Positions 9,799 through 64,000 of a stretch of DNA of 64,000 nucleotides are shown here, in pieces. The DNA is from Blepharisma stoltei ATCC 30299. Taxonomy: Eukaryota; Protista; Ciliophora. The notes under the pieces are model-generated. The model was not told the origin of the DNA. It saw nothing but the letters and a program-made list of their open reading frames with translations, and made no database searches. Position 1 is the stretch's first letter. Each line of letters begins with the position of its first letter. The position numbers were made by a program, and so were the translations under genes. The DNA is taken from the NCBI GenBank assembly GCA_965603825.1, contig CBFDEM010000036.1, forward strand, positions 988,431-1,052,430, given 5' to 3'.

Positions 9799-12700
9799 AT
9801 GGCATTGAAAGAATTCTTGTTCCTTTTGATAATTCCAGCTACTTTTGCAATTGGATATGACGATCTTGGCTCGATTGTCCCATCTGGACATCTTCCTATT
9901 TCTTTATCAATAAATAACGCTGACGAAATTGCTGACTATTCTTTTTCATTTACAGCAGATCACACAGTGCCAAGCGGAGGTACGATAGTAGTTACCTTCC
10001 CTTCACAGTATACCTCAGGGTTTACCACATCTCCTACCTGCAATCTTGGGTCTTGCTCTGTATCTAGCCAATCTGTTACAACAACCTTATCAAAAATTTT
10101 AGAATCTAACACCTTTAGTATTTTAACTATTTCTGGTATTACAAATCCGTCATCGCCTGGAGGTGTCGGAAACTTCCAAATCCAGACCTTTTACGGCGCC
10201 AATATGATTGACTCAAATTCTGCTTTTGGGGTAATCGGAATAGAAAACCTTATAGGCAGTATGATCTCCTCTGGGGTTAGTGTCGCTTCTGGAGAAGACG
10301 CTAAAGCAGGTGTATCCACCAAATATGAGTTTAAATTCAAGCTAAATCGTCCTTTAGGTGCTTGGAACTGAATTCGCTTTACTTTTCCTAATAATGGGTA
10401 TACTTTTGACGCTTACCCTACATGCTCCTCATACTCTATTAATGGAAATATTGTAGAAGGCAGCCTATGGTGCGTCAACAATGGTAACCAGGTCCAATTG
10501 ACTGGGATTGCTGCCGATCTACAAGCTGATTTTGACTATGGGGTCAGGGTGGTTGTTACAAATCCTAGCTATACAATTGCGTCAACTGGGACTTTTACTA
10601 TAGAAACTGGGCACAATTTGACGAATTCTATATATGATAGAAGCTCAGGGATCAGTGGGATCCCTATAAAGCCAGGGCTTATCACACAGATAAGTTTGCA
10701 GCCACAGGAGGCCTGAAATTTGACGACTAGTAAAACTATTGTATATAGGCTGAAATTTATGCCTTCGAATCCTATAGAAGTGGGTGGACAAATTTTGATT
10801 ATTGGATCGAGTAGCTTTAATATGAATGGGCTGGGGATATATCAGCTTGAATATGGATTATCGGATTTATCAACATCCCAGGCTTTGTCTTTTAGCTATT
10901 CTTCTAGCTCTTATACCTTATCTATAACAAATTTTGCGGAATATTCAAAACCAGCACTTATATCACTCCTTTTACAGTTTACTAATCCTTCAGTATCTGG
11001 GTTAACAAGCCCTTTAATTATAAGAACTCTTAAAGCGGACGGAAACACTGTTATTGACGAAAATATATCAGACGCTACAGTAGAAATTTCTACCCTAAGC
11101 TCACCATTATCAGTATCAGTCAGCTACCCAGGATCTTCTACAAATCAAGCTACTGGGGCGTTTACTGATATAAGGATAAGCATTTCTCCACAGCTAGAAA
11201 TCCCTGCTAGTGGCTGAATCCAGGTGACACTTCCGAGTGGCTTTTCTATAAATTCATTAGTTGCACCTATTTGTAAAGTAAAGCCGACTTATATGACAGC
11301 GGCTACTGCACAGTCTTGTTTTGTGGTAGGAAGCAAAATTGCAGTTCAGCTATTTGCGGACTCTGCTGGGGTTTATGGAAAATTCCAAGCTGGGGTGTCA
11401 AGCTATTTTGAAATTTCCAATATTTACGCCCCAAAGAGCTCAGGGTGGTTTATTTTTGATTTTGGGACTTATGATAATAATTTCGGGTTTTTGGAGTCTG
11501 GGTCGGCTACTGTAAATATGGTAGCTTATGTACAATCTACGATTGCTGTAACTGCAGTTCATACAGGACTTGATACTCCTACAGTCATTATTTTTTCTTG
11601 GACCGCCCAAGAAGATGTGGCCAGCGGGGTTGCTTCTAGTAGTCCTTATAATGCCCAAGGCTTTGTAGAAATTAAATTCCCTAGTATGTCAGGGGGGAAC
11701 AATCTTTTTAGAACTGATTTAGGCCTAGGAGTTTCTGTTGGGGCTTCAGTTCCATGTTTAGGGGTCTCTGGTATTCTTCCTGCATCTGGATCTTCTCTAA
11801 GCTGTATAATTACAACATTGCCAAGCTCAGCCTCATCAAGCACCCCTGCAATCATTACAATTTCAAATTTTCTTGCAATTTCTAAGACATCAAGCATTAT
11901 TATCCATTTCCCAGGCATAAAATACGTCCAGACCACCAATTCTCCTACATACACTATCACAACCTACCAAGTCACCAACCGAATTCGAGCAGATTTAGAC
12001 ACAGGGACTTATACAGGAAGCGCCGGGACTTCTCCTCCTTCCTCCACTACTTCAGGTGTAACTATGACTTTGTCCAGTTTTACAGTCCAGTCTACCTCAA
12101 CTTTGGCGTCTGGCAGTGCTTTTACAACCTCTTCCGCGACTGGATCTACCCTTCCTTATTTACTATTCCAAATAACACCTACCCATGATTTAGGATATTG
12201 TCAATACGCCACAGTTTCCTGTACCATTGATGGGGCTGCAAAGACCTGTTTATGCTACCCAGGGATTGACATGATTATGGTGACTTTAACTGCAAGCTTG
12301 GCGGCTGGGACACATACTTATTCAATTGCTGGGCTTTACAACCCTGAATCAGTCCCTACAACTCAAGATGATCTTGTACTATATACCTGTGGAAATCAGG
12401 CTATGGTTGAAAGTTTTACTTTTACAGGGAAAATACCTACTTTGACCCCTGGAGGGTTCATGAATCCAAATGTGGAGCCTACAAGTTATGGCCAAGGCTA
12501 CGTATTTGTGCAATATACATTTACATTCTCCCCTGTTCACGCCATCCCAGCTGGCGGCTCTGCACAAGTAATTTTCCCTTCTTCTTATTCTTTATCTAGC
12601 AGTTCTCCCTCCCCCTATTGCAGCACCGTCTTTTTATCAATCCTTGACCAATCCGGCTCGACCTGTACAGTCACTTCTAATACCATTACAATCTCAATCC

Positions 12701-15700
12701 CTCAAACTCTTTACTCCCAAAACATAATCTACATCAAAGTCCGGGGTGTAAAAAACCCTTCTGCCTCTTCCTCAGGGACTTTTACATTTAAAACCAAAAA
12801 TTCATCAGGCAGAACTATTGATATGGACTCCACAATCCCTGGAATTACCTTTACGACTGCTTACAGTACAAAATCTATTACAGACCTAGGCTTGTATTTA
12901 TACCCATCCTCTGCTAATGCTACAGCAATCTACGCATTTGAATTTCAAGCTTCTGAATATTTAGGAGCTGGAGGGACTATCCAAATAGTGTTCCCTTTAA
13001 CTCAGTTTGGGATATTGAAAACTCCTCCTATCTGTAGGATCACAAACTCTATATCAAGATATTCTTCCTGCTCAGCCACCGCCAGTACTGTTACTATAGT
13101 TACTGGGACTGACCCTATATCAGGAAAAGTCTTAATTTCTATATTAAATATCAGAAATTTCGACCAAGGCCAAAGCTCAGAATTTATGGTCACAACTTCT
13201 TATGATGGGGTTACTCTTCAACAGACGCCTTCTTCTACATATTTTGCTACTACAACGGCTCAGTCTCCATCACTTACTGTAACTTCTATTGTTTTTTTCC
13301 CTAAAAATGAAGGAGAACTGGCGACTTATCAGTTTTATTTTACCCCTAAATATGATATTGAGGAAGATGAGAGTATTGTGATAACTTTTCCTTTTCAGTT
13401 TGACCATGATTTGGGGGAGAATTTTTATTGCTGGGCGACAGGGATGACTGGGTATTTGGAGTGCTATTTGATTAGGTCGTATAACTTGATTGTGTCAAAA
13501 CATGACGCGTTTAAGGCGTGCTCAAGCTGCCAAATAGTGCTATATACTTATGGAATAAAAAATCCAAATTACAGCGGCTCAGCCACAGATTCAATAAAAA
13601 TAGGAATTTTAAGTGGAAGCTCTTATAAAGAATACAATGAATATGCCGGCACAATAACCACAGTTGCAGCTCCAAAGTACAACAACTTAATGAATACCAC
13701 CACAGATAACCTCTACGCTCGATATACAGGCACTTTTTTCTTCAATTTCACCACAACTAGCAGCATCCCAGTTTCCAGCAACGGCGGCGAAATTTGGGTA
13801 AAATTCCCTTCTGATTACGTTTTAATGGACTCAAATTTCCATTGTCGCTCTACCAATAGCTGGGCTGATGGACTTCCCAATTGCACTTTACAATATGACA
13901 CAATTCGGGTAAAAGGCCAAACAGCCCAATATAAAGGGAATTTAGGGCTTTATATTGACAATGTTCCGCATCCTTTACAAGAAGGCTTTGCAGGGTTTAT
14001 TGATGTAGAGATTTATGATGGGTTTAATTATATAATTCTTGATAGGAGCTACCCGAATTTGAATCCAAATCGGTTTAATTATTCGTACCCTGGGCCACTG
14101 CTACATGTAAACGGTGATGAAAATTTTGTGGTAAGGAGAGGGTGTATGTCAGAATTTATTACAATTACACTGGATTATCCATGCGGGCTGAATCTTACCC
14201 TTGTTCCAGCTTCGAATAAGTTTAATTTCTACCCTCCCAATATTTATATTAATACAGGCGACACCTCAGCTAGCTTTAGGGTCTCGATTCCTTCTGATAC
14301 TGAAGATACCGAATACGCTATTTCTTGGACCACCACAGGAGACTACACCCCTCCTTTTTACAGTCAAATTTTAGTATCCACTTTTAACGTCTCCAAAGAC
14401 ATTTCAGTCGCCATCACCCCTGAAGAAATCATGCCAATCCCGCTTGGCGGCAGCTCTTTTCCTATAAAAATTGTCCTTCAAAGTGCCCCTGACTCTGACA
14501 TCACAATTCAGCTTACAATTGACAGCTCCATTACAGGGATAACATTATCAGCTAACAGCCTGACCTATAAAGCTGAGGTCTATGACCAAAATTTTACCAT
14601 TTCAGTATCCAGTACTGTGACTGTCAAAAACTGCACAGTCCATTATTCAGTAAGTGGGACTAATGCAGACTCTTATTCTTTTACTGCAAATTCTCAGACT
14701 TTTGAAATCTTTAATGATACTGAAACTTTGGAAATTTTGAGTGTTTCACCTATAAATAATACAAGGGCAACTGCGACTATAAGGATTTCGACGACCAAGG
14801 TATGTACTTGCTATTATCAATATTCATTAAAAGGCACCACAAATCCAAGCCTTTCTGATGTCGTCGATAAGATAACCCCATTATCAACTACTAGGACTAT
14901 TTATGGCAGTGTCAGAATATTTAGTTCTTTATCAGAAGAAATCGTAATTACTGGGTTAACTGCACAAACTTACTATACAATTTATGTGTGGGGTATCGAT
15001 TTGTTAGGAAATTCGACTGAAACCTCCACAAATGCGGATTTTACGACATATGACCGGTATAAAGCAGCAGAAATTTCGCTGCAGTTTGGCCAGTCTTATG
15101 TAAATTCTGTTGAAATTTCTACAATTGCGGCTGAAATTTCGCTGTTGTTAAGTATTCATCCTTGGAGGGTGCTAAATGTCCCAGTTCCGGAAGTAGAAAA
15201 CCTGAGCAGTACTAGTGTTACTTTTTATATAATGGACAAGCCAGATTCTGATGCTTATCCAGAGCCTATTGATATGGTTCCAATTCTATCTGCAGCTAAA
15301 GGTAAGCTGAGCTCTAGCCTTAATAACTTTAATGCTGCCCAAACTATTACAGGGACTGAATTAGTGATTAAGGAATGCGCATTTTCGACTTATCCTTATG
15401 TTTTAAACTCAAGTGACTATAAAAGTATATCATTTTCAGCTGCACTAGAAAATGATGGGTATATTTATTCTATATTAGAACTCACTAATACCTCTAAAAA
15501 GGTCCCTTATTCTTTTCAAGTTTTTAATGGGAATAATTATGCGAATAAGCCTGCTATGAGTATTAAAGCACAAGCTACTGCAGGAGTGGCTGTGAATTCT
15601 ACATATTCAAGCCTATCCCAATACACGCAGTACACTCTAAATGTGATTTGTACGAATACTTATCCTATTTTCCCTGACGTTGCGTATGATTCAGGAGTAG

Positions 15701-15804
15701 CCACCATTATACATATAACGCCTAAGAAGCCAAACCCAACTCCTTTGAATATAAATAGCGCAGCTATCTTGCCTTTACTTGCTTTCTTATTGTTTATTTT
15801 TTAA
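9799..15804 (+). CDS. large secreted, probably GPI-anchored, Ser/Thr-rich beta-sandwich repeat surface protein, 2001 aa
   Basis: Four track ORFs in one frame joined by TGA (10369, 10714, 11215). It has a signal peptide, repeats of the form YxFxF...GGxIxIxFP...C..C...IxNP, FN3-like segments near the C-terminus and a short hydrophobic C-terminal tail. Confidence 0.85.
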
Positions 15805-15901
15805 ATAACAATTATTTTATACTATTTTATCCATTCCTATCTCTCTAAACTCCTAATTCTTACTGCTAAAATCACTAAAAAACAGATTAATTTTAAAATA
15901 T

Positions 15902-16984
15902 TTATCCCTGGTACAGCTTTTCTGTGATCAGCTCCAAAATTTTTTCTCTTTTCGTCAGCTCATCCATAAACTTCTGCTTCAAATAGTCATTAAGCTTCTT
16001 AATCGAGCTCATTTTGACCTGCTGCACGTGCTCTTTAGTATCTTCATAGCATTCCTGTATCAATTTAAACAATTCTCCTTTATTTTCCACTTCTCGCCTA
16101 TACGCTTCTCTAGCAGCCCTTGCGTTATTTTTTTCCACTTTTAGCTGTCTTTGTAGCTTATACACATAATTTTGTGTATTTAAAGAGCTGATTTCTTCTC
16201 TTTCAGTATTTATAGGGTTATTTACCATAGCAGGGGATACTCTTTTGTCAGAAATACAGTCAGGAGGGATCGTGCTCAGGCTTCTCGGCATCTCAATCGG
16301 TGGCAACTTCATTTTTTTCTTTTTCAGCTTAAAAAGTTTGTCTTGGAGTCCTTTAATCTCTATATCTCTTTCTTTTAAATTTATTGCCAGCTTTTTATTT
16401 TCTCTTTCTAAGCTGTTATTCTTTGATTCTATCATAAAAACTGACGCTTTTAGCAGCTCAAGCTCTTCTGTCAATTTTATTTCTTTTTCAGCCAAGCTGT
16501 CAATAAACTCGAATTTTTCCTTTTTTTCCTTTTCCAGCTGTTTGCTGATTTCTTTTAATTTTGTATTAAAAATAGCCCCTAAGGCTTCTTCTTTTTGTGA
16601 TAACATTTCTTGGACTTTGTCTTTCATAAGCTCGATACTGTCGAATAGGTTCTCATAGGAGCCTGAGACTGATTTTACGTCATCTTTGGAAAGCTTGAAA
16701 ATGCTTTTGCGTCCGGAGAGCTCGTCTTGGTAGCCTCTGATTAAATTTTTGAAGCTTATTTCTGCTTTCATGGCTTGGCTGTCTTTCTTTTGAAGAAATT
16801 CCAAATGGGTGCTGAGTTTGAGGTTTTCGCGTTTTAATGCGTCGTTTTCTTTTTGGAGGTCAGAAATTTGGTTTTGGAAACGGAGGATTTGGTCACGTAT
16901 TGTGGCGCCTGGGTTTTTTAGCAGAGGGGATTTTGATTCTGTAAGAATATCGTCTTTGGATTTTGACTTTAAGAGAGAGTCCAT
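15902..16984 (-). CDS. coiled-coil protein, 360 aa
   Basis: Long ATG-TAA ORF with heptad E/K/L-rich composition. Confidence 0.8.
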   Translation of the reverse strand: MDSLLKSKSKDDILTESKSPLLKNPGATIRDQILRFQNQISDLQKENDALKRENLKLSTHLEFLQKKDSQAMKAEISFKNLIRGYQDELSGRKSIFKLSKDDVKSVSGSYENLFDSIELMKDKVQEMLSQKEEALGAIFNTKLKEISKQLEKEKKEKFEFIDSLAEKEIKLTEELELLKASVFMIESKNNSLERENKKLAINLKERDIEIKGLQDKLFKLKKKKMKLPPIEMPRSLSTIPPDCISDKRVSPAMVNNPINTEREEISSLNTQNYVYKLQRQLKVEKNNARAAREAYRREVENKGELFKLIQECYEDTKEHVQQVKMSSIKKLNDYLKQKFMDELTKREKILELITEKLYQG

Positions 16985-17164
16985 AGAGAATTATTTTGAT
17001 GGCAATATTATTATTTTTGGTTGGCTTAAGTAGGCATAAGAAATTGAGTCGTTTTAGGGCTAGAAATGCTAGAAATGTAGATTACTAAGTATAGGATGAT
17101 AATTATAATCTGTCATATCTATAATATTTTTTTAGATATAATAGCGTTTTCGTACCAAAGTAAA

Positions 17165-17545
17165 AAGAGATTGTCCTGTGGATTTTCCATCAAAAATTCT
17201 GAATTAATGGAGAGAAAAGTGAACCACTTGTGCGGAGCTGTATAGGGAAATGATGAGTGTTGGAGATCGATGAAGTGAAATCGAGAACTTAAATAGAAAT
17301 TGGCCATGGAGTTTTTTGAAGCTGAAGATGAGATTTTGTTAACCAAAAAGTTCAGGATTTTTGGCGGCCCACCTTGGATTAGTAATGTGTAAGTTGGTGA
17401 TTCATTGAAGATCTAAAGCATTTTAGAAGTGCGGAATTGCAATAGAAAGTATAAATTGGTCAATTGGAACTTTGCTTGTGAAAGATGTGCAATTTTGCAA
17501 GAAAGAAAGAGAGTCTGATATCTATCAGCGGTAAAGTCTTAATAA
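17165..17545 (+). ncRNA. putative structured non-coding RNA, copy A (unidentified family)
   Basis: No credible ORF in either code. Nested stems rich in G-U pairs on the + strand, with the same ordered motifs as 25860-26245 (see findings). Confidence 0.4.
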
Positions 17546-17840
17546 CAGTAATAATCTTTCATATCTGCAAAATAATGGAAAATAGTATAATAATATTAGA
17601 AGCATATTAATATGCTTTAGGTAATCAGTTCTATATAGAAATAAATTATTTTTTAAATATCTAGACATCCTATAATAATTGCTAATTAAATTCTATTTTT
17701 ATATATCGTTGATGCTTTATTTCATGGTTTTATACTATAAACCTCTAAGTGTATCACAAATAACCCCATAAAAAGGCTCTTAACCTTCATTTCTACTTAT
17801 TATCTATTTTTAATAAGTTACACTATCCTATCATAATAAC

Positions 17841-19721
17841 ATGGATTCCAAAGTCCAAGAATTTGACTCTATATGAGTCCTATCAAATTTATGAAAAGAA
17901 AAATCCCTCTTCAAAACCAAGCTTCCCCTCCCTGACACCTTATTATCAGACGCCTTTGCAAGATACTCAGTCAGGTGATTATTTACAGATTCCAGCGGAT
18001 TTATTAAAAAGAAATGCGACGAAAGCACAAAAACCGAGACCATTCTGCATCGATTTTTATTAGGAGAAGATCTAAATACAATCTCGTCACAGCCACAGGT
18101 GGATCTACATCATCATAAGGTTTCTGAGCCTATTATTTCTTCGTATATCTCGTATAACGATTTTCACCCACTTACAAAGCAGCAGACTATTATTAAAATT
18201 ACAAGTGGCGTAGGCACATCAGAAGCTATACAAATGCTGCCAAGGCCAAATGGAGACTATAGCAGCCGGTTTTTAGCTGAAGTTAGAAAAGATGAAGGGA
18301 GAAATATTTATAAGTTTTATAAAACTTATAATTATCAAGGAGTCGAGCAAAAAATTGTCGTTTGTGGGGCAAAATACAAAAAATTCTTGACTGATTTAAG
18401 CGAAATTGTTATTGAAGCACTTCAAAAAAACACGTCATTTAGGATCTTACAAGCCACTTTTTGCTTTGTGGAAGATGAAAAATTCAATCTCTGGTTTCTT
18501 GGCAGCTTAAACTGCTATGGAAAACATGTGACAATTAAACCAAAGCCCAGCTTAAAAGAAATCATCGTCGACCCTATGGCCAGCACATACTCTTTTGGAG
18601 GGCCAAGTGTGTATAATCAAACACTTGGCGGTTTTTATACAAAAGCAAGCTATTCAGCAGCAGGACTTGGCCTTAAAACAACCCTAAAACGAGGCTGCCC
18701 AGGCAGTTTTTGCAATTTTGTTATAAAAAGTAAGGCTCAGCTCACAAAAGATGAAATGGACTATGACGATCTATTAAATGAGGTCAGAAAAATCTATATA
18801 AATGGTCTTGAAAAAGAGTACACAAGGATGAAACTTTCCCTTAGATCTGATTATTTGCTTAAAGAAATTTCCAATAAAAAGCTTAAAGCAGTAAAAAATG
18901 ATATCCCTTATAAATACATTTTATTTGGGAAATTATTATTAGAAAAATCAGGGATAAAAAAACAAGACCAGCTAGTCGAAGTTGATGCAAATCAGCTACG
19001 TCGGTCTTTATTAATAAAAGACCAAGAGCTCCTCGAAGACAGACTTAATTTAAACGAGCTAGGTCTTAAAAACCCATTTCACTATTACGACATTGTACAA
19101 GTATGTGACCGATGCTACGAAATTTATAAGTTATTAAGAAACAACAACCCTGAAGACAATTCAATAGAAAAAAATGAAAGATTGTCTCTACGGGCGTCAA
19201 GACCAATGACAGGGTCTCGGCCAATGACGTCAAAATCAAAGAACTCTCGGCCATCGCTCATGACCCAGAGCTCAACTGCTAGCATTGTAGTCCATTCTTC
19301 AAAGTCCAATAGGACTCATGACAATCTTTCGACTATTGCGACTGAGAGAAGAAGAAGCTCTCTTATTACGCCCATAGGGATGATTGATAAAGATAATATT
19401 GACGATTTATTGACTGACATGGACCATTTAATGCTAGAAGAAGAACTTGACTCAAAAATCGTAAACAGAAATATCAATTATTGGTCGAAGTCGTTAAAAA
19501 GGACTAAAACAAATATGGCAGAGGCACAGAGCGTTAAAAACACCCCTCTAATTGACACGAAAAAAGTAAAGGACACAAATTTTGAAGCGCTGACTATGAA
19601 ACTTTTTCCGGACGCCAATCCGGATTTCTATCAAAGTCATAAGAAAAAAAAGAATTTTAAATATTATATCAAATCCCTCAAAGAAGATAAGTTTGAAAAG
19701 AAAAAAGATAATTACTTATAA
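17841..19721 (+). CDS. uncharacterised protein with a degenerate ATP-grasp-like N-terminal region and Cys motifs (CPGSFC...VCDRCY), 626 aa
   Basis: ATG 17841 is in frame with the 18099 ORF through three TGA codons; motifs LPLPDTLL, WLFTDSSGFIKKK and FVEDEKFNLWFLG. Confidence 0.75.
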
Positions 19722-19766
19722 TTGACATAATAAATTCAAATCTCTTTTAAGTACACTTAGGATAAA

Positions 19767-22700
19767 ATGGACCAGCTAAGCGATCCTTATGCGGTATATT
19801 CAGAGCTGCTTACATCAGCCTTCGAAAAAATAAACAAGCACTTACAAAACTGAAAGCACAAAGAACTGCATGAAAGCTACATGTCTGCTTTAGAAAAAGC
19901 CAAAACAGACCGATCTTTAAACGCTGATCAATATTTTCCAATCCTTAAGCAAGCCTTGGACACAAAAATTACAAGTATCATTGAAACCGTTCTGTATTAC
20001 ATTCAAAAATTAATTTCACATGGATTTATGACTGGGAATTCCATTGATCCAGCGACCTCACAAAGATTGGTCGATTCAATCGTAGAAAGTGTCTGTAATT
20101 GTGTAAGAGAAAGAGACGACAATGTTCAGCTGCAAGTCATAAAAACACTACTAACAATGGTTACTAGCTTTAACTGTGAGATCCATGACAAAATGCTATT
20201 AGAAGCTTTTAGAGCTTGTTATCATATACACATTACCAGCAATAATTTAGTTAACCAAACAACATCTAAAGCCACCCTAACTCAAATGCTGCATTCCTTA
20301 TTCCAAAAAATGGAAAGAGCTTCAACTAGCTTCAATAAAGAGCCAGTAGACTACATGATAAAATCCTTAGTCCGGCTAATGGTCGACAAAATAGAGCTAC
20401 AGCAAATTGACCAAGACTCAGCTGATACCAAAATTACAAATGAAAATGATATAGAAGCTGGAACCTATGGGTGGTGCACAGTCTGCAGAAAGCCTGCAGA
20501 GTCTTTATGTGACCTGACCTCTGACCCTATTTGTTCAGACTCCTGCAAAGAAGTCAACCTAAAAAACATAGATTCTGCAGACCAGTGCTTAATTGGCAGC
20601 GAAAATGAAAGATTTACTGACGCTTTAGTAGTTTTTAGGTCTATATGCAAACTCAGCCAAAAAGAATTGTCAAAGTAAGAAATATTTAGCACAACCCCAA
20701 ACTTGACGTTTAAGTCTAAAGTTTTGTCATTAGAGCTCTTATTGACACTTATTGATAACCCTGGGCCTGTATTTTCGTCTCATCCGCAGTTTTTAGAAGT
20801 CTTAAAAGGGACTTTATGCGAAAGTTTATTACAGAACTCATTTTCATATGAAACTACTACCTTTGCATTAACTTTGTCTATTTTTGTTGCACTGGTAAAT
20901 AATTTCAGAAGCAGCTTGAAAACAGAAATCGGGGTATTTTTGGATCAAATTTTTATATTTTTGTTAGAAAGCGATAATGCATCTTATCAACAGAAATTAT
21001 TAGTAATACAAGTTTTCTATCAAATTGCTCAAAACCCTAGGGTAGCGCTCGAGCTGTTTTTAAATTATGACTGCGATATTGATGAAAAAGATGTGTTTAC
21101 CAGAATGATCGATAATTTAGGAAAAATCGCTATTGGGAAGCATAAAGGAGACCACCAGACAAACCCTCAAGATCTTGTCCTTCGTGCTACTGCATTAGAA
21201 ACTCTTGAAAAAATCGTGGTTTCTCTTGTAGCTTGAATTGAAGAAAGCCCTTCAAACACCAAAAATGATGACAGTCATGATGACAGTGAGTCAGCAAGCG
21301 ACATGACCTCAGAAATCCCTATAATTGCGCTAGACCCTTATGAAAAAGCTAAACAGCTTAAAGCAATATATGCTAGAGCTGCTTCAAAATTCAAGATAAA
21401 GCCATCGTCAGCTATCAATTACCTTTCTCAATGCTCTTTATTAGACTCTACTAATAAAAAAGAAATTGCTGATTACCTTAAAAGCTCAGAATTAGACAAA
21501 ACTCAGCTTGGAGACTATTTAGGAGAATTCAAACAGTTTAACTTAGAAGTCCTTCAAGAGTATTGCCAATTATTTGATTTTAGGAGCTGTTCACTGGTGA
21601 GAGGCTTAAGAGTATTTTTATCAAGTTTTAGACTTCCAGGAGAAGGACAAAAAGTTGACAGAATCATGCAGACTTTTGCAGCGAAATTTCATAATGATAA
21701 CCCAAATATTTTTTCTAATGCTGATGCAGCTTATGTTTTGTCGTTTTCTATTATGATGCTGCAGACAAATTTGCATAATCCAGCTGTTACTGATAAAATG
21801 CAGTTGCATCAATTTATAAAAAATAATGAAGGCACAAATAATGGGCAGAATTTCCCTGATGACTTATTAGAAGCTATTTATAAAGAAGTCAAAGAAAATC
21901 CATTTACATTACAAGAAGATGACGAAGCTAGAGTGAAATTAGAAAGCACAGGAAAAAAGAAAAATGAAATTTTTGCCAAAGAATCACAACTAGTCATGAA
22001 AAAAGGCCAAGAACTAATGAGGAAAACCAAAAGAAACAACACCTATCATATTTCTAACGATGTAGAACATATAAAAACTCTATTTGAAGCTATCTGGCAG
22101 CCTCTTATAGCAACTTTTTCAATAGTGCTGGAAGAAGCCACCGACCCCAATTTCTGAAGACTTTCTCTCCAAGGCTATTTAGCCTGCATAAGAATTGCTT
22201 GTCGCTTTGGACTTAATCTAGAAGTCGAAATTTTAGTATCTTCTCTAGCCAAATCTACCTCTTTATTGCAAACCCACAGCACAGTTTCTGATAAAAACGT
22301 AGAATGCATGAAAGCCTTACTAGAAATTGCCAGATACCAAGCCAATTTTTTAAAAAAATCTTGAATACACGTACTAAAATGTCTATCAAAATTAGACCAT
22401 TTACATATGATAAGTTCTGGGGTAGAATATAATGGGATTGTAAGTGAAATGGATCATACAATTTCAGAAAACGTGTCAAGCAAAATAATCCCAGATGATA
22501 TTGACTATGTATTTAGTGCTTCTGAATATATGGATGATGACTCAATTATAGATTTTGTGATTCAGTTAATTGAAGTTTCTAAAGCAGAATTAAATTCTGA
22601 TACCTCTCAAACTTTTTGTATTAAAGCTCTAGTAAATGTCGCCCATGTGAATATGAATAGGATTCGCTATGTCTGGGGAAGAATTTGGAACCATTTAAAA

Positions 22701-24257
22701 GAACATTTTTCGAAAGCTGGGCTGCATCCTGATATTTCTGTAGCTATTTTTGCAATAGACTCTCTTAAACAACTGGCTATGAAATTTTTGCAAATTGAAG
22801 AAATGGCTGATTTTCACTTCCAAATGGGCTTTCTGGAAGCTTTTGAGCTGATAATGAAGAATACTCCAAGTGAGCATGTAAAAGAGCTTGTGGTAAATTG
22901 CATCGCAAATCTTGTAAAAATGCTGTCCCAAAATATAAAATCAGGCTGGTTTTCTATATTTGAAATATTCAGGCTCGCTTTAAGAGGTAAAAATGAAGCA
23001 GCTACTCAGCTTGCATTTTCTGCAATAGAATATGTAGTAAGTACTCATTTAAGCCTGCTCTCCAATAACATGCAAGAACTTGTATACTGTTTGTGTGCTT
23101 TTGCTTCAAGCGGAAATGAACAATACTGTTTAAGAAGCATGGATTTAATAGGGAACTGCCTACAAGAGACTGCAAGAGGGACTATAAAAGGCGACTATTG
23201 GCTGCCTTTATTATCAGAAATTTCATCAAAATTATTAGCTGAAAATACAAATATAGAAAATAAAGCCTTGATAATTTTATTTGAAAGTTTAGATGCCATG
23301 GGAGACGTTTTTGACTCGGAAAAATGAAAATTAATATACACTGGAGTGATTCTGCCTGTTTTTGACGATTTTGAAGGAGGATTACAAGCTAGTAAACAAT
23401 GGATAAGCTCCACCTGCCAAAAAATTTTGCTTTTATTTGTAAAACTCCTTGTCGATCATTATTCCAGCTTAAAGTTCTTGATTCCTGATTTTTTGAACTT
23501 GTTACAAACTGGGGTGTGTACATGCCAAGAGCAAATTGCAAGAGTCTGCACCAATGCTTTTAACCAACTCGTCACCAATTTGCCAGACTCTTTAGAATTC
23601 TCAGCCTTAATGCTTTCTTTTCTATCAAACTGCCTTAAAGGAACCCTCCCAGAAGAATTGCTTATAGAGCCAATAAATAATGAGCTACAGTTTGATGCAA
23701 ATAAATGCATAGAAAAATGCATGATTCAGCTCCATATAATTGCGTCAAGTAAAATAATTTCAGCAAATTTATCAATATTTAGCGATGAGTCACTAAAAGA
23801 ACTCTCAACAACTTTAAAGGAATCTTATAGGTTTTCCAAAGGATTTAACTGCAGGGTAGACTTAAGGCAAAGACTGTGGCAAGCTGGACTATTGAAACAC
23901 ATGAAAACGCTACCAGGGATTTTTAAGCAAGAAAAAGAAAGCTTGGCAGTTTATTTAGATATTTTGTTAGCCATTGTAGCAAGAGATGAGAAAAGCAAAG
24001 AAGAACTTTACTGTCTAAGTGAAGAAATTATTGCAGAAATTTTAGATAAAGGCAAACTGTCAAAAGACAGAGCTGACGAAGTCCTTGCTCTCTACCCTGT
24101 AGTCGCTGGAACCTTATTGCCAGGAATTTCAAAAGATTTAAAAACAGTAATGAAAAGAATGGGAAGGCTAATTGTTGACCTTATCCAAGTAGAAGACCAA
24201 GCCGTCAGAGAAGAAGTAAGAAAAATGCTGATAATGGCAATAGAATTTATTAATTAA
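19767..24257 (+). CDS. BIG/Sec7-type large ARF guanine-nucleotide exchange factor, about 1491 aa, one 15-nt intron
   Basis: DCB region, HUS box LFLNYDCD, Sec7 motifs FRLPGEGQKVDRIM and AYVLSFSIMMLQTNLHN, and HDS regions (NMNRIRYVW, DSLKQLAMKFL, NIKSGW). Continuous when TGA=Trp and 20675-20689 is spliced. Confidence 0.95.
20675..20689 (+). other. 15-nt spliceosomal intron
   Basis: gtaagaaatatttag; removal eliminates the in-frame TAA and restores the Sec7 gene frame. Confidence 0.9.
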
Positions 24258-24337
24258 AATTATAAATGATTCTCATAAAGGGGCAGAAACGGCTCTTAAA
24301 TCAACTATAAAAATGAACCCATTTTCCAATAAAACTC

Positions 24338-25859: not shown

Positions 25860-26245
25860 TTATTGTGGATGGCCCCTTAGAGATAGGTGCACATTCTTTG
25901 GTCCCTAGCCTTGGAAATCGGCTAAATGCCAAAAGATTGTATACAATGCGAAATTGCCTTGGGGAAAAATTTTTGATATTGAGACATTCGTACATTTAAA
26001 AAATTTCTGGCCGAATTTTCTTCTATGAATTGCATAGACCATTAGGCCGCACCTTGGAGTCGTGCATTCCGAATTGTATAGCTCGCCCCAAGCTGCAAAG
26101 GCTGCATTTCGTAAATCTCTAACTGATCTGAGTGAGTTTCTGAGCTCAAAGAAGAGTCCTTAAAGCCCAACTTCAAGACAGCCTCTATCAATTAATCAAA
26201 ATGCCCACATTTTAGTAGAAGAAAATGTGCCTGAAATTGGCATGA
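25860..26245 (+). ncRNA. putative structured non-coding RNA, copy B (unidentified family)
   Basis: About 42% GC by hand count over 25861-26160, with no credible ORF and at least six properly nested helices (see findings). Confidence 0.55.
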
Positions 26246-54664: not shown

Positions 54665-55345
54665 GTTTTTAATGGCAAGTTTTATTTAGCAATTTTGAAA
54701 ATCATCCAGAGACTATTTCAAGTTATCGCCCTAGGAAGTTCAGCGATTTTGAGTCCGAAACAGAAAACTCTCCAAATAAATTTATAAAGCAACCTAACAA
54801 TTTCTGTTTCCATTAGCTTCAAATCTTAAAGCACCTTAATTCCATTCAGGTCTGGTATTTATTGTATTTAATTATTGGCTTTCTTGGACTGTTTTGCTAA
54901 AGATTTTTTGTAATTATTTTTTGTGGAAAGTGATAGGTCTTCCATTGAAATGAAGGCTATTTATCGTCGTTTTTGCAAGAAGTGCTGCTTACTATTTTCA
55001 CATAATTGAGCCTATTGATAAATCTTTTACAAGAAAGAAGGAAGATATTTGCATAAAATATAAAAAGCTACGAAAAAGTTTTAGATTTGCTATAATATCT
55101 GCCAAGTGCTTAGCCTCTGTTTCTGGAAAGCACGTGGATAAAGAAACTGAATGACGAAAATAATAGAATCCTTAGAATAAATTAATTAGTTTTTAAGCTC
55201 AATTAAGAGATCACATAAATTCAAATTCTTCTAATGGCAAGATTTATCTAACAATTTTGAAGATCATCAAGAGACAATTGAAAGTTAACACCCTAAGAGA
55301 CTCAGCGATTTTGAGCCCGAAACAGAAAACTCTTCAAATTTGCAT
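54665..55345 (+). repeat. local duplication of a pseudogenic segment (54665-54780 and 55225-55340)
   Basis: taatggcaag.ttt...caattttgaa.atcatc...cagcgattttgag.ccgaaacagaaaactct.caaat occurs twice; both copies translate NGK.YL.ILKII.R....SAILSPKQKTLQI with nearby stops. Confidence 0.75.
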
Positions 55346-55589
55346 ATATTTTTCTGCAAGAAATCCTGGACATTTAGAGTTCAAATAACAGTCTCTGACT
55401 AAGGGTGCTTTAAAGAGACTATATAAATGGATGGATCAGTGCTGAGTGGGCAAATCATTTGTTCAGCGATGTGTCCCAATAATTCTATAGGCTATACCAA
55501 AGAGATTCTAATGAGAAAAGGGTTATTTTTAGAATTCCCAAAGTCCAAAGCATAGCGTATCTTAAATTTATGATATCTTTAATAAATAT

Positions 55590-56657
55590 ATGGAAAGATC
55601 AGCTGATCTCCCACTCTCCGACCCCAGCGGTATCAGCCAGCCTCTTCAAAGCTCAGTGAAAGAAACCAACGAGAAATCCAGCTGTGAACTTCAAGATATC
55701 AATCAGACCCTCATCAGTCCCAGCATTATGATCTCTAATGCAAATTTAGCATGAGATGAGATCAGAATAGAACTCACCAGAAAAGAAAACCAGCCTGTGA
55801 GTGGAGAAGAAGCCTCAAACGTTGAAACCAAGCAATCAGCAGCTTCCGTCAAAGTGGACTCAGAGCATGCAGAAAAAATCGATTTACTTGATGAAAAACT
55901 CAGAGACGTAGACATCAGCACGAAAATGGAATCAGAGTTACTACAAAATTGTTTGGAAATCGAAATAGATCAGAGGCAAAAAAATGAAGAGTATAAGGAT
56001 GGTGCAAATGAACTAAAAAAACTAGAAAAGAAAATAGGGGTGCTCGAAGGAGAAATAGAAATACTAAAGGTAGAATGAAACCAATTAGCGAGAAATTTTG
56101 AAGATGAAAAAAGCCTTAGAAAATTGCACAATGAAGAACTGGAAAGACAAATAAATCTCGTATGGAAATTCGTAACTGAAAAAGAGGAAGCAATGAAAAA
56201 AAAAATGGAAAAGCAAATGGAAGTAATCGAAGAAAACATGATAAAAGATAAAGCAGAATTTGAAACAGATTTGGAAAAAAACATGACAAAATACTTAGCA
56301 GAATTTGAAACAGAATTGGAAGAAAAGATGACAAAATACATAGTAGAATTTGAAACAAAATTAGAAAATCAAATGAAAGTATTTGAGGAAGGCTTAAAAA
56401 AAGATAGAGCAGAAATGAGGGCTGAATATAGAGAATTGGAAGAGGAAATTAGATCATTGAGAAAAGAAATCAAAAATCAAGAACATTTCAGAATAAAATT
56501 GTTAAGTCAAAGTCTTCATCCTATGAAGGACGTCTTAAATTTCTACATAGACAATTGATTGAAGAGATTGAGAAAAAACTTTATTGTCATTTATCGGCTT
56601 ATTTAGGCAGGAGCCGAGCAATTTCAGAGAAATTAAAACCTTAATTGAGAATAACGA
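55590..56657 (+). pseudogene. coiled-coil family gene, frameshifted and 3'-truncated
   Basis: ATG 55590, open with TGA=Trp. Homology to 58151-59452 shifts frame near 56505 and again near 56610, then stops at the junction with the trHb-gene copy. Confidence 0.75.
56253..56378 (+). repeat. 45-nt (15-aa) tandem repeat, about 2.8 copies
   Basis: AEFETDLEKNMTKYL / AEFETELEEKMTKYI / VEFETKLENQM. Confidence 0.85.
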
Positions 56658-57704
56658 TCTTATTTGTGACATAATTCCTTGCTTATCATCGTCATCAACC
56701 CCAAACTCAGTCAAAGTCACATCAAAAATATCTGCATAGCAGTAAAACTCTTCAAGCGTAATTCCCCTTAAATAATGTGCCGCTCTAAGTCTTCGCCTAA
56801 GTTCTAAATTCAAGCTCCCATTAATAATTTTAAACATCCCAGTCACAATCCCTTCAAAACTTTCCATGGTCGATTTCTTGAAATATTTGTTTAATAAATC
56901 GCACGATAAAATTTTGTTATATAAACTTATGATGAATTTCTCCCAAAACTGTTCTCCACCGTATTTTATGACGATATCTTGTTCTCTTACCTTTGCGATT
57001 TTTATATTCATAGTCATTTCATCATAAGTCCCAATGACTCCCTCAATGCATTTTCTTTCGATTCCGTCATCAATTCGTTTTTCGTCACCTGGAGATTGGT
57101 CTTGCAACATTTTTGATGAAAAATGCCCCAGTGATGGGGTCATAGGAGCTTTTGTGTGGTTAAAGCTTTCTAAATATTCATGAATGCTTTCTTCTCTGTT
57201 TATAGGACTTATTCTTCTAGGGGATTTTTGTGCATTAAGTCGGTCGATTTTCATGTTTACTTTATTTAGTCTTTCTATAATATCTTGTTCTGAGGTCAGT
57301 TCGTGAGGGATTTTTGGAGCTTTTGTGCGGATTTTGAATGGGCATGACAACACTTCTTCAACTTTTTCGCTGATTGGGTTCATTGAAGTGGTAGAAACAG
57401 GCCTGGATTCTTCATTAGGAATATCACTAATCTCGGTTTTTGCTCTTTCTAAATGCTCATGGTCGTGATTTTTGGGCATATCAAGCTTCATTTTTGGCTT
57501 GCTATGAATAGAATAATCTACCAAATGTTCCTTACGGTCTAATAAAACCAGTATTGTTTTTATCCTTCACAAAATCAAGGACAATTCTTCAAGTCCTCCA
57601 TATTGATTAAATAAAGCACCATTTAAAAAATCTACTATATGCTCGACCATAAGTTCTATTTCTCCTATTTTTGGAAAGATTCAGCTGCATAGCAGCTATC
57701 AATA
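56658..57704 (-). pseudogene. inverted partial duplicate of 41312-42362 (3' half of the trHb fusion gene)
   Basis: Near-identical translation over about 290 aa; single-base deletions in 57525-57680, no 5' part, and the native C-terminus is replaced. Confidence 0.92.
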
Positions 57705-58150: not shown

Positions 58151-59452
58151 CTATCTTTCAGGAATTACTCTGTAAAGAAGTTGATGCATAGCGAAGCTCT
58201 CACTGTTTACGTCCAATTTTGAAATATATTCTTCAACTCCATCTATTTTTGAAAGAACATGATGGATGTAGCTACTGAGTCTTTTTTTGTAATCTTTTAA
58301 TTGCCTCCACTCTCTTAATCCAAAATCATAGTTTTGGTTCAGAAAAATTTCAATTTTTTGATTAATCTCTTGAGATTCAAGATTGTTTTGCTTGGTTAAG
58401 ATTTTAATATCTCTAAAATCTTTCGGCTTCCGGCCTAAATGAACTGATAAGTGACGAAAAAGGCTTTGCTCAACTTGCTCTATTAATTGCCTATGTAGAG
58501 ATTTAAAAGATGCTTCATAGTATGAAGACTTTAGCATAGCGTTTTCGTTCTCTAATGTTTTCGACTTGCTCATTTCTATTCTCATCGATTTCACCTGCGA
58601 TTTTAGTTTTTTATTTTTAGCCGCCGCTTCTTCTTTGTCTTTTTTTCTGTATTCTTGATTTAGTTCCATTTCCTTCTCCGTTTCGACTTTAATTGCTTTT
58701 ATTTCCTTATCCATTTCGGCTCTTTCTGCTTTTATTTTCTTATCCATTTCGGCTCTTTCTGCTTTTATTTCCTTATCCATTTCGGCTCTTTCTGCTTTTA
58801 TTTTCTTATCAGTTTCGGCTCTTTCTTTTATTGTGTTTTCTTCAATTGCTTTATTTATTTTCTCCTCCATGGATTCCAATAAGGAAATTATGTGGTTTTC
58901 ATGGACTTCCTCTTCTCATTTTCTATTCCTTTTTTCGTCTTCAAGATTTCTCAATAATTGGTATTTATCTGCCTTCAGCATTTCTATTTCTTTTTCGAGC
59001 ATCCTGATTTTTTTTGCTAGTCTTTTCAGTTCATTTGCATCTTCCTTATGCTCTTCAATTTTTTGCCTCTGATCTATTTCGATTTCCAAGCAATGATTCA
59101 ATAGCTGTGATACTATTTTCGTGTTAGCATCCACGTCTTTGAGTTTTTCGTCAAGTAAAGCTATTTTTGCTTCAAGATCTGAGTCCACTTTGACGGAAGC
59201 AGCTGATTGCTTAGTTTCAATGCTTGAGGCTTCTTCTTCATTAACAGGCTCGTTTACTTTTCTGATGAGTTCTATTCTTATCTCATCTCATGCTGACTTT
59301 GCACTCGAGATTATAGTGCTGAGACTGATGAATCCCTGGTTGACTTCTTGAACTTCACAGCTGAATTTCTCGCTGGTTTCATTCACTGAGCTTTGAAGAG
59401 GCCCACTGATGCCACTGAGGTCGGAGTGTGGGAGACTGGCTGATCTTTCCAT
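58151..59452 (-). CDS. coiled-coil family protein, apparently intact, 433 aa
   Basis: ATG 59452, two TGA read-throughs, TAG 58151; paralogue of 55590-56657. Confidence 0.8.
58695..58826 (-). repeat. 33-nt (11-aa) tandem repeat x4
   Basis: Unit gcttttatttYcttatccatttcggctctttct on the + strand, encoding ERAEMDK(E/K)IKA. Confidence 0.95.
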
Positions 59453-60071
59453 ATATTTATTAAAGATATCACTAAGCTTAAGATACGCTATTATGCTTTG
59501 GACTTTGGGAATTCTAAAAATATAGTAAATACTTAATACTTAGTTTTTGATAATAAGGGATTTGATATTAATAGTTGCAGTAATTACAAAATTACCTTAA
59601 GAATATTAGAAGATGTCTTACAATAAAACTTTTAATTACTAAAGTATTAAAAATTTAATTAAAAGCAGCATAAGGAGTAATTTTTATGAAGTGGGAAATT
59701 TATGCAAAGGATTGACTCTGTTAGTTATTTAAGCGGGCTTAAGTAAAAAACTTTGAGAAATAAATTCTTAGACTAGTAAAAATATCAAAGTGATTTTGGA
59801 TATTCACTAGGCCTAAAGGGATAACTTACCCAGTTAAGGCAAGGTGAATTTTAATGGCTAATAGTGCTGAATAATGCTTATGAGGAGTAGCACGGACAGA
59901 GTGATTAAAAGATAAGTCCCACAAATGCGAGTTTTCTGATCCCTACTATTGATAAACGACTTAGTACCTTAGATATTGGTATTTGAATAGTCACTCGATT
60001 TGGTGGCTTGTGCTTTGATTTCAAAATGCCCCATTTTATTAAAATGCATGAATTTGGTAAACGAGAATAAT

Positions 60072-60744: not shown

Positions 60745-61749
60745 TTAAGTAGCATCAGTCTGGACCTCTTTAAGCTCAATCATTACTTTTTCTTTTAAAT
60801 TAAATTTATAGTAGAATTTTTCAGGATTCCCAGTCTCCAAACAACCAATATAAATACTTTCTTTATTATATGAGCAATATACCTGATCATATTCATATCT
60901 AACTAATGATTCTCCTACTCGTTTCCAGGTATACTCATCTCCAATCTCACTTTCGTAAATAAATCCGTTGCTTTCTCAGTCTCTGTCTTCAATTAAATAT
61001 AGTCTCTCTGAATTTATCAAGATCTTGCGCTTATATTCTTTAAAATCATAAGGAATTATAGAGAAAGAATCAATTTCAGGTGAGTATATTAAAATATGTG
61101 TAAATCGATTTCCAGAAATTAAAATATTCCCTTTATATATAAAGCTATGGCACCATGAATCAGCTATCAGCATTGGGGCTATTTTAATTCACCGATTTTC
61201 ATCTAAGCAAAATCTGCAAGAAAAGTTTAAAATTTTTACATTATCATATCCTCCAAAGCAGTAGACACTTCCATTGAAATATATAGCTGATGAATAATAT
61301 CTGAATGTTCCAGATGGCAACACTCGAGTTTTAAAAGTCCTGCCAATTATCAAAGCACTACTAGCGGCTAAATAAAGATTACTCAAACAGAATAATTCGC
61401 CATTCGGAAGTTGAGTGAGGCATACGTTCGCTGTTAGCTGATTTGGAGAATCCAAGACTATCGTTTTTTCAGTTTCAGTTTCAGTGTCATAAATGATCAA
61501 ATCAGTATCGATATCATCTCCCCTTTGAACGAGATAAAGGGATGAGATATGATGATAAGAGCTAATAAAATCATGATAAACCCTTGCTAGTAATATATCA
61601 GATTCATAATTTTGTTTCTCATATAGTAAGCAAGTTTTCCTAAAATCTTGTTCGATTTCTGTATTGTTGGCACCGCTTAAGATCTTTGAAACTTTACCAT
61701 TTAACTCTTGAGGATTTAATTGATTAGCATCTTGATTGGACTTGACATT
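60745..61749 (-). pseudogene. Kelch-like beta-propeller gene whose start is removed by the telomere
   Basis: 335 codons open (TGA=Trp) from the telomere junction to TAA 60745, with no in-frame ATG at the 5' end. Motifs QLPNGELFC, SSAIYFNGSVYCFGG and ENRW. Confidence 0.8.
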
Positions 61750-63973
61750 AGGGTGTTAGGGTGTTAGGGTGTTAGGGTGTTAGGGTGTTAGGGTGTTAGG
61801 GTGTTAGGGTGTTAGGGTGTTAGGGTGTTAGGGTGTTAGGGTGTTAGGGTGTAGGGTGTTAGGGTGTTAGGGTGTTAGGGTGTTAGGGTTGTTAGGGTGT
61901 TAGGGTGTTAGGGTGTTAGGGTGTTAGGGTGTTAGGGTGTTAGGGGTGTTAGGGTGTTAGGGTGTTAGGGTGTTAGGGTGTTAGGGTGTGTTAGGGTGTT
62001 AGGGTGTTAGGGTGTTAGGGTGTTAGGGTGTTAGGGTGTTAGGGTGTTAGGGTGTTAGGGTGTTAGGGTGTTAGGGTGTTAGGTGTTAGGGTGTTAGGGT
62101 GTTAGGGTGTTAGGGTGTTAGGGTGTTAGGGTGTTAGGGTGTTAGGGTGTTAGGGTGTTAGGGTGTTAGGGTGTTAGGGTGTTAGGGTGTTAGGGTGTTA
62201 GGGTGTTAGGGTGTTAGGGTGTTAGGGTGTTAGGGTGTTAGGGTGTTAGGGTGTTAGGGTGTTAGGGTGTTAGGGTGTTAGGGTGTTAGGGTGTTAGGGT
62301 GTTAGGGTGTTAGGGTGTTAGGGTGTTAGGGTGTTAGGGTGTTAGGGTGTTAGGGTGTTAGGGTGTTAGGGTGTTAGGGTGTTAGGGTGTTAGGGTGTTA
62401 GGTGTTAGGGTGTTAGGGTGTTAGGGTGTTAGGGTGTTAGGGTGTTAGGGTGTTAGGGTGTTAGGGTGTTAGGGTGTTAGGGTGTTAGGGTGTTAGGGTG
62501 TTAGGGTGTTAGGGTGTTAGGGTGTTAGGGTGTTAGGGTGTTAGGGTGTTAGGGTGTTAGGGTGTTAGGGTGTTAGGGTGTTAGGGTGTTAGGGTGTTAG
62601 GGTGTTAGGGTGTTAGGGTGTTAGGGTGTTAGGGTGTTAGGGTGTTAGGGTGTGTTAGGGTGTTAGGGTGTTAGGGTGTTAGGGTGTTAGGGTGTTAGGG
62701 TGTTAGGGTGTTAGGGTGTTAGGGTGTTAGGGTGTTAGGGTGTTAGGGTGTTAGGGTGTTAGGGTGTTAGGGTGTTAGGGTGTTAGGGTTGTGTTAGGGT
62801 AGTTAGGGTGTTAGGGTGTTAGGGTGTTAGGGTGTTAGGGGTGTTAGGGTGTTAGGGTGTTAGGGGTGTTAGGGTGTTAGGGTGTTAGGGTGTAGGGTGT
62901 TAGGGTGTTAGGGTGTTAGGGTGTTAGGGTGTAGTTAGGGTGTTAGGGTGTTAGGGTGTTAGGGTAGGGTGTTAGGGTGTTAGGGTGTTAGGGTGTTAGG
63001 GTGTTAGGGTGTTAGGGTGTTAGGGTGTTAGGGTGTTAGGGTGTTAGGGTGTTAGGGTGTTAGGGTGTTAGGTGTAGTTTAGGGTGTTAGGGTGTTAGGG
63101 TGTTAGGGTGTTAGGGTGTTAGGGTTGTTAGGGTGTTAGGGTGTTAGGGTGTTAGGGTGTTAGGGTGTTAGGGTGTAGGTGTTAGGGTGTTAGGGTGTTA
63201 GGGTGTTAGGGTGTTAGGTGTTAGGGTGTTAGGGTGTTAGGGTGTTAGGGTGTTAGGGTGTTAGGGTGTTAGGGTGTTAGGGTGTTAGGGTGTTAGGGTG
63301 TTAGGGTGTTAGGGTGTTAGGGTGTTAGGGTGTTAGGGTGTTAGGGTTGTTAGGGTGTTAGGGTGTTAGGGTGTTAGGGTGTTAGGGTGTTAGGGTGTTA
63401 GGGTGTTAGGGTGTTAGGGTGTTAGGGTGTTAGGGTGTTAGGGTGTTAGGGTGTTAGGGTGTTAGGGTGTTAGGGTGTTAGGGTGTTAGGGTGTGTTAGG
63501 GTGTTAGGGTGTTAGGGTGTTAGGGTGTTAGGGTGTTAGGGTGTTAGGGTGTTAGGGTGTTAGGGTGTTAGGGTGTTAGGGTGTTAGGTGTTGGGTGTTA
63601 GGGTGTTAGGGTGTTAGGGGTGTTAGGGTGTTAGGGTGTTAGGGTGTTAGGGTGTTAGGGTGTTAGGGTGTTAGGGTGTTAGGGTGTTAGGGTGTTAGGG
63701 TGTAGGGTTAGGGTGTTAGGGTGTTGGGTGTTAGGGTGTTAGGTGTTAGGGTGTTAGGGTGTTAGGGTGTTAGGGTGTTAGAGGGTGTTAGGGTGTTAGG
63801 GTGTTAGGGTGTTAGGGTGTTAGGGTGTAGTTAGGGTGTTAGGGTGTTAGGGTGTTAGGGTGTTAGGGTGGGTGTTAGGGTGTTAGGGTGTTAGGGTGTT
63901 AGTTAGGGTGTTAGGGTGTTAGGGTGTTAGGGTGTAGGGTGTTAGTGGTGTAGCTTAGGGTGTTAGGGTGTTA
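61748..63973 (+). repeat. telomere, (TTAGGGTG)n = (CCCTAACA)n heterotrich type
   Basis: About 2.2 kb tandem 8-mer with the G-rich strand running toward the window end; scattered indel variants increase distally. Confidence 0.99.
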
Positions 63974-64000
63974 TATTATTTTAAAGGGTGTTGGTATTTG

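Follow-up and report, generated by a model that had tools for sequence, protein, structure and literature searches.

A discrete intergenic transcript of Blepharisma stoltei has one paralogue and may represent a lineage-restricted non-coding RNA gene

What kind of element occupies the 857-bp gap that separates two divergent genes of the ciliate Blepharisma stoltei? A preliminary description of the 64,000-nucleotide stretch of DNA analysed here (the window) had proposed that this element, A, and a second intergenic segment, copy B, are diverged paralogues of one RNA family under selection for structure. The assembly that holds the window is macronuclear, with 41.46 Mb in 64 contigs and TGTTAGGG telomeres. 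The published macronuclear genome of B. stoltei ATCC 30299 comprises 41 Mb with CCCTAACA telomeres, introns of 15-16 bp and very short intergenic regions (10.1101/2021.12.14.471607). As the same paper reports that UGA encodes Trp, open reading frames were read with TAA and TAG as the sole stops. The window itself runs into a telomere: positions 61745-64000 consist of more than 2.2 kb of TGTTAGGG repeats, which start straight after unique sequence and include occasional variant units (GTAGGG, GGTTGTTA, GGGGTG and GTGTGTTA).

In the public record GCA_914767885.1 both genes flanking A are called and no gene is called between them, leaving A unannotated. This record (MAC+IES) is longer than the window at the locus owing to seven insertions (IESs) of 71-348 bp inside flanking genes. 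In the part that matches window 13541-19231 they measure 109, 182, 348, 71, 97, 292 and 293 bp, and their hosts are a 2001-aa gene and the 626-aa gene. The 293-bp insertion has a MITE-like look, with an inverted repeat of 158 nt (89% identity) in its interior. Window 15723-18062 is uninterrupted in the MAC+IES assembly, with no IES in or beside A. Being both uninterrupted and uncalled in that record, A is thus ordinary DNA that is destined for the macronucleus and has no gene model. The plus strand shows a strong excess of G over C (skew +0.2 to +0.5) across window 16900-17650, from the 5' end of the coding sequence in the minus-strand gene through all of A; at the 5' end of the next plus-strand gene the skew is reversed, and the sense strand is thus C-rich near the start in both flanking genes. 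The features discussed below are listed in Table 1.

Table 1. Coordinates of element A, its parts and its neighbours (window positions unless another contig is given)
Feature	Position	Strand	Remarks
360-aa gene	ATG 16984	-	Intronless; left neighbour of A
626-aa gene	ATG 17841	+	Right neighbour of A
Transcribed unit A	17124..17572	+ (probable)	Own contigs in four transcriptome-like runs; ~450 nt
Direct repeat, left copy	17096..17127		32 nt, 75% identity, core TAATCTNTCATATCT; AT-rich presumed promoter region
Direct repeat, right copy	17542..17573		32 nt; matches contig ends at 17572
Conserved core shared with C	17222..17470	+	C is G000:C39:45611-45883, minus strand; 74% identity over aligned columns
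Near-invariant block	17253..17290	+	38 nt, two C/T transitions between A and C; holds hairpin H4
Outer helices H1 (17227-35 with 17437-45) and H2 (17238-43 with 17429-34)	17227..17445	+	RNAalifold consensus
Putative three-arm domain	17255..17423	+	Closed by H3 (17255-61 with 17417-23)
Arm H4	17267-17271 with 17280-17284	+	Inside the 38-nt block
Arm H5-H7	17285-17353	+	RNAalifold consensus, putative
Arm H8-H9	17355-17414	+	CACC/GGUG at tip, putative
Copy B	25879..26160	+	No detectable relation to A or C; for reference
SDR gene of related ciliate	L011:4991-5809	-	Syntenic to window 16985-17840, between the 360-aa and 626-aa orthologues

To evaluate transcription of the gap we used four runs of one 2022 study (~30 Mb of contigs in total), whose nature as transcriptomes was guessed from their size and coverage pattern: genes are covered, positions 17676-17809 and 19686-19800 are empty, and contigs break at gene ends. 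The contigs of A span 17145-17572, 16989-17538 (run X2), 17124-17552 and 17238-17572. They show no joints, and A is therefore unspliced. On the right, depth falls to zero at 17676-17809 in four of four runs and the contigs of the next gene begin at 17829-17873. On the left, an uncovered gap from ~17028/17060 to 17123/17144 lies between the minus-strand gene and A in three of the four. Run X3 gives a depth of 15.3 for A as against 10.2-11.7 for the neighbouring 360-aa gene, so that A is not merely the leader of that gene. Together these data establish A as a discrete, independently transcribed unit. The contigs continue across internal runs of T5-T6, which makes a Pol III unit unlikely.

The strand of the transcript can be approached through the contig ends. 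Two contigs stop matching exactly at 17572, each with 5-6 further unmatched letters, and the opposite end carries no such extras. These letters, on unstranded contigs, may reflect the poly(A) tail of a plus-strand RNA. A is probably read from the plus strand, starting in the AT-rich region from which A and the 360-aa gene diverge head to head, and its transcript probably ends near 17570 and is polyadenylated. An improbable alternative places the transcript on the minus strand, as an upstream non-coding transcript or a long-leader isoform directed towards the 360-aa gene, and would make any plus-strand fold irrelevant. It draws on the unstranded contigs, on the run X2 contig that joins 16989-17538, and on the plus-strand excess of G over C, which extends into A from the 5' end of the 360-aa gene; but it sits poorly with the gap on the left in three of four runs, with the greater depth of A in X3 and with unmatched letters at the 17572 end only.

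We then asked whether A has relatives. With A as the query, blastn against the genome found one other place, G000:C39:45622-45836 on the minus strand, with 74% identity (E 1e-26 to 5e-26); with B as the query, B alone matched. The relative of A, which we call C, sits between two tandem ABCG-transporter genes and in their orientation, and its neighbours are unrelated to those of A. Beyond the conserved core, the flanks of A and C have no significant similarity (5' z=-0.7; 3' z=1.8, 34/500 shuffles). As the flanks cannot be aligned, change has been slower in the core than around it. We built a covariance model (R1) from the alignment of the two cores; across the genome (41.5 Mb) it recovered just A and C, at 275 and 310 bits, respectively. 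The conserved 25-mer had no match in the JGI metagenomes. A and C are thus a two-member family, with significant homology at unrelated loci. At A, the 32-nt direct repeat brackets the transcribed unit, with a significance that we estimate to be marginal; locus C has no comparable flanking repeat. The string TTTCA(T)ATCTG..AATAATG(G)AAAAT is found at the right repeat of A and at a similar distance past the core of C.

The finding of C bears directly on the proposal that A is related to B. The motifs listed for A in the preliminary description are all present, at or within 1-2 bases of where they had been placed, and their B counterparts are present too; those of A include agagat (17166-71), the gtgg/ccac hairpin with ttttccat/atggagag, tgcgga...gggaaa, ggcc...ggcc, caccttgga (17370-78), gaattgcaatag, cttGTGAaag, gcaattttgca and gagagtc. 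The observation that both segments lie head to head with a minus-strand gene was also confirmed (ATG 16984 and ATG 25832). The step from these motifs to diverged paralogues was not supported, with sequence similarity and motif order both at background and no covariance-model hit in B. Smith-Waterman alignment of A and B scored 21, compared with 20.7±2.7 for dinucleotide shuffles (z=0.12). A gap-tolerant global alignment that scores exactly the by-eye collinear motif chain gave 66.8 compared with 59.1±3.8 for shuffles (z=2.0), and 54 of 402 real segments from the same window (13%) scored as high or higher. An unfiltered R1 scan of the window placed 228 sites at E<=10, none of them inside B (25880-26160). 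A structural-alignment score within background had been named beforehand as the result that would speak against the A-B link, and the score lay there.

C was equally informative about the motifs themselves, which had been taken to be under structural selection. It lacks the ggcc/ggcc stem, the GTGA mini-hairpin, the 17178-17227 hairpin and the 17489-99 partner strand, and that strand had been assigned to the tgcg helix; the A/C consensus instead pairs tgcgg with ttgca of gaattgcaatag. Folding energies of the single strands were unremarkable relative to dinucleotide shuffles, at z=-0.36 for the plus strand of A, z=+0.09 for its minus strand and z=-1.48 for B. The strong excess of G over C on the plus strand (GC skew +0.3 to +0.5) explains the abundance of hairpins that depend on G-U pairs. 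The best local alignment of A and B, and their lone notable common word, is GGCC(G)CACCTTGGA. Genome-wide there are three GGCC(N)CACCTTGGA sites, one of them within a kinase gene, and we rejected the rarity of the word as evidence for the link, both on account of this third site and because it was the A-B comparison itself that had supplied the word.

It follows that a distant A-B family, diverged past the reach of sequence methods, appears very improbable to us. Its case is made by the identical motif order and the shared head-to-head arrangement, by the occurrence of CACCTTGGA in the window at A and B only (0.31 expected; 4/100 shuffles reach 2), and by two pairing possibilities common to both segments, namely tgcgR with ttgYa of gaattgYa and a hairpin closed by CAC(C) and G(G)UG. 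Against this, the local alignment is at background, real control segments equal the chain score in 13% of cases, the unfiltered scan ranks 228 places above B, the genome-wide model search recovers A and C alone, and most of the motifs shared with B are absent from the real paralogue of A. What survives of the RNA-family idea is that A, a non-coding RNA, does have a relative and shows a degree of fold conservation; the relative is C, not B.

Coding potential was evaluated in all six frames of the A/C core. TAA or TAG stops interrupt every frame in both copies. Amino-acid identity between the cores is 0.49-0.62, compared with a nucleotide identity of 0.74, and non-synonymous changes far exceed synonymous ones. 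ORF pieces of A matched no Pfam family; the longest minus-strand ORF (75 aa) had no relative in the protein collection, and no homologous contigs were fished with it. No frame of A thus gives a sign of coding constraint. One could still regard A as the mRNA of a very small protein, encoded by a plus-frame ORF (MMSVGDRW...) of 30 aa in A and 36-43 aa in C. The start of this ORF and 13 residues are common to both copies, and by our reading six changed codons are synonymous. The common residues, however, fall in the near-invariant nucleotide block and so are uninformative about selection on a protein. In addition, six consecutive codons are radically changed, the C-termini and lengths differ between A and C, the ORF start is not the first ATG of the transcript, amino-acid identity stays under nucleotide identity in all frames, and Pfam holds no match. 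We regard the micropeptide as highly doubtful.

To evaluate whether the cores of A and C share a fold, we applied RNAalifold to their alignment. The plus-strand consensus has an energy of -38.75 kcal/mol and 60 pairs, none of them broken, with 4 compensatory and 15 one-sided G-U-compatible changes. Column shuffles that kept the conservation and gap pattern gave -21.5±3.6, corresponding to z=-4.8 on the plus strand; the minus strand gave z=+0.7, so that the excess of consensus structure lies on the plus strand only, a further point against a minus-strand transcript. The structure conservation index (SCI) of the plus strand was 0.69 versus 0.39±0.05, with none of the shuffles reaching 0.69 and single-sequence energies unaffected by shuffling. 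A control paralogue pair of the same identity gave zSCI values of -0.3 to +2.1. This pair consists of inverted paralogous segments of the window, 58379-59522 and the reverse complement of 55524-56661, which are 74.7% identical over 1152 nt. Within the A/C consensus, 32 of 32 gap columns and 10 of 12 transversions fall in unpaired columns.

Other measures were less favourable to the individual helices. The consensus structure is 14-17 kcal/mol worse than the MFE of either sequence, most of its helices are of low probability when A is folded alone, and among the helices only H4 reaches a high predicted probability in both A and C when each is folded alone. The pair-probability ensembles of A and C, folded independently, overlap no more than those of shuffles, both globally and with a span limit of 70 nt. 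The two-sequence covariation of 4 compensatory pairs is equalled by 28/500 shuffles, and by our count G-U pairs make up 29% of the paired cells. The outer helices H1 and H2 contain one compensatory pair each and have low thermodynamic support in single sequences. When domains were folded in isolation, H3, H5 and H8 closed in both A and C, and the isolated H8-9 arm had an energy of z=-4.0 in C and z=-0.3 in A. On these predictions a shared plus-strand fold of the core is somewhat likelier than its absence, with the exact set of helices provisional.

Comparison with known RNA classes gave no identity for A. No Rfam family matched A in a search of the window at the gathering score, and at E<=10 the A and B regions returned noise only. 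ARAGORN found nothing, and a sigma-70 promoter and terminator scan was set aside as not meaningful for a ciliate. RNase MRP and RNase P RNA (RF00030, RF00009) resemble A in size range and multi-helix architecture, and as a pair of paralogous RNAs they recall the idea of a common helix order in A and B. Unlike them, A has no Rfam match at E<=10 and no RTCCCWTA box upstream, this being the heterotrich USE consensus (Fajkus et al. 2021, PMC8287931). The RNase MRP gene of this genome (106 bits), its RNase P gene (83 bits) and two U3 genes lie on contigs other than that of A. RNase P, RNase MRP and U3 were accordingly rejected as identities of A, given these canonical genes elsewhere, the missing USE box and the missing Rfam match. 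A TGTCCCATAA box that fits RTCCCWTA occurs ~55-60 nt upstream of the RNase P RNA gene and both U3 genes (contigs C18 and C32 of G000), and the RNase MRP gene has no exact copy of it. Neither RTCCCWTA nor TGTCCCATAA is present within 200 nt of A, B or C, so that none of them has the box of a USE-driven, snRNA-type gene.

Two further classes of small RNA were considered. Heterotrich telomerase RNA resembles A in being small, nuclear and non-coding; such RNAs were reported by Fajkus et al. (2021, PMC8287931), and the B. stoltei genome paper did not find one with Rfam models (10.1101/2021.12.14.471607). We rejected this identity for A, B and C, which contain no match of 6 nt or more to the CCCTAACA template on either strand and no USE. 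Elsewhere in the window, positions 55286-55296 (plus strand) read TAACACCCTAA, which over 11 nt matches 1.4 telomere repeats of the C-rich strand and has the size expected of a telomerase-RNA template; by our estimate ~0.2 such matches per window would arise by chance. It lies upstream of a gene starting at 55591, and the near-USE string tgTCCCAATAat at 55473 is downstream of it. A box C/D snoRNA was also rejected: in A, AUGAUGA (17250-56) is followed by CUGA 72 nt further on, with no terminal stem, both boxes are altered in C (UUAUGA and UUGA), and the Rfam snoRNA hits are noise.

The closest resemblance is to lineage-restricted polyadenylated lncRNAs, a comparison that takes the poly(A) tail and the strand of A as we read them from the contig ends. 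Like these, A is discrete, unspliced and unannotated, arises from a GC-richer intergenic island, lacks both a constrained ORF and a promoter box of the snRNA type, and has no conserved counterpart at the syntenic site of a relative. It differs from generic lncRNAs in having a paralogue at an unrelated locus, a conserved core set against diverged flanks, and a statistical signal of shared fold.

The syntenic site was identified in a Logan contig from another ciliate (SRR24908292), which is collinear with window 10621-24265 and whose flanking proteins are 55-80% identical to those of B. stoltei; collinearity ends at 24265, before copy B. In this ciliate the slot of A holds an intact gene for a 272-aa short-chain dehydrogenase (SDR, adh_short) in the same orientation, and the nearest SDR homologues of B. 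stoltei (65% and 51% identity) are on contig C57. The A/C model found no hit at the syntenic locus, and it found none at the relative's tandem ABCG locus, where the upstream flank spans 383 nt and orthology to the locus of C is uncertain. The idea that A is a decayed SDR gene was rejected, as A, B and C yielded noise only when searched by tblastn with the SDR of the relative. With an SDR gene and no A-like element in the related slot, the RNA of A is therefore not ancient or essential across heterotrichs. It is not deeply conserved at its locus, and is either lineage-restricted or has moved.

This distribution raises the question of whether A and C are transcribed relics of duplicated or once-mobile DNA, such as a retroposed or transposed fragment, with no function as RNA. 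The apparent fold would then be a by-product of G+U-rich composition or an inheritance from the RNA of the element. Just two copies at unrelated loci with unrelated flanks, the 32-nt direct repeat that brackets the A unit, the absence of an A-like element from the slot of the related ciliate and the weak thermodynamic support for the fold are all consistent with such an origin. Yet A has no terminal inverted repeats and C no flanking repeat, A is dissimilar to the seven IESs of the neighbouring genes, no IES boundary lies in or beside it, conservation is limited to the core and does not extend to the flanks, and the surplus of consensus structure shows on a single strand and not in the control pair. 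A relation of A to the local IESs was rejected, as no similarity was found. SINE- and MITE-like elements, including those borne on Blepharisma IESs, are likewise dispersed at unrelated loci, and A has a direct repeat; A and C differ from them in having two macronuclear copies only, no TIR, no IES similarity and no excision boundary, and A is unlikely to be a Pol III unit. A mobile-element origin of A is possible but unsupported, and we consider it unlikely, though deserving of attention, that A and C are functionless relics.

Our preferred reading is that A is a non-coding RNA gene, functional and restricted to its lineage, with C as its one paralogue; to this reading we assign a probability of about 0.55. 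The functional part of A would be the G+U-rich core of ~250 nt that is kept in C, with the flanks having diverged past recognition. We anticipate that the core acts as RNA, in the form of a folded multi-helix domain that combines the H3-closed three-arm junction with the 38-nt block. Such a core would most likely be the protein-binding scaffold of a lineage-restricted lncRNA rather than a universal RNA machine. A more specific version, in which A and C are two genes of an undescribed structured RNA of the heterotrich lineage and the core is a subunit or scaffold of a specific ribonucleoprotein, is offered tentatively, and on present evidence is itself rather unlikely.

For the genome of B. stoltei, the comparison of A with B provides a calibrated negative, in that a by-eye resemblance in motif order between two G+U-rich islands is background there, and claims of RNA families in this genome therefore need real-sequence controls. 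Beyond protein genes, the annotation of B. stoltei covers only a limited selection of Rfam RNAs. On our reading of A, at least some of its "long" intergenic gaps would be real, separately transcribed non-coding genes with paralogues, which makes A relevant to annotation and to expression studies of conjugation. If the core shared by A and C is indeed a folded ribonucleoprotein scaffold, it would represent a lineage-specific RNA that RNAi could knock down, in a ciliate whose genome-editing biology is unusual.
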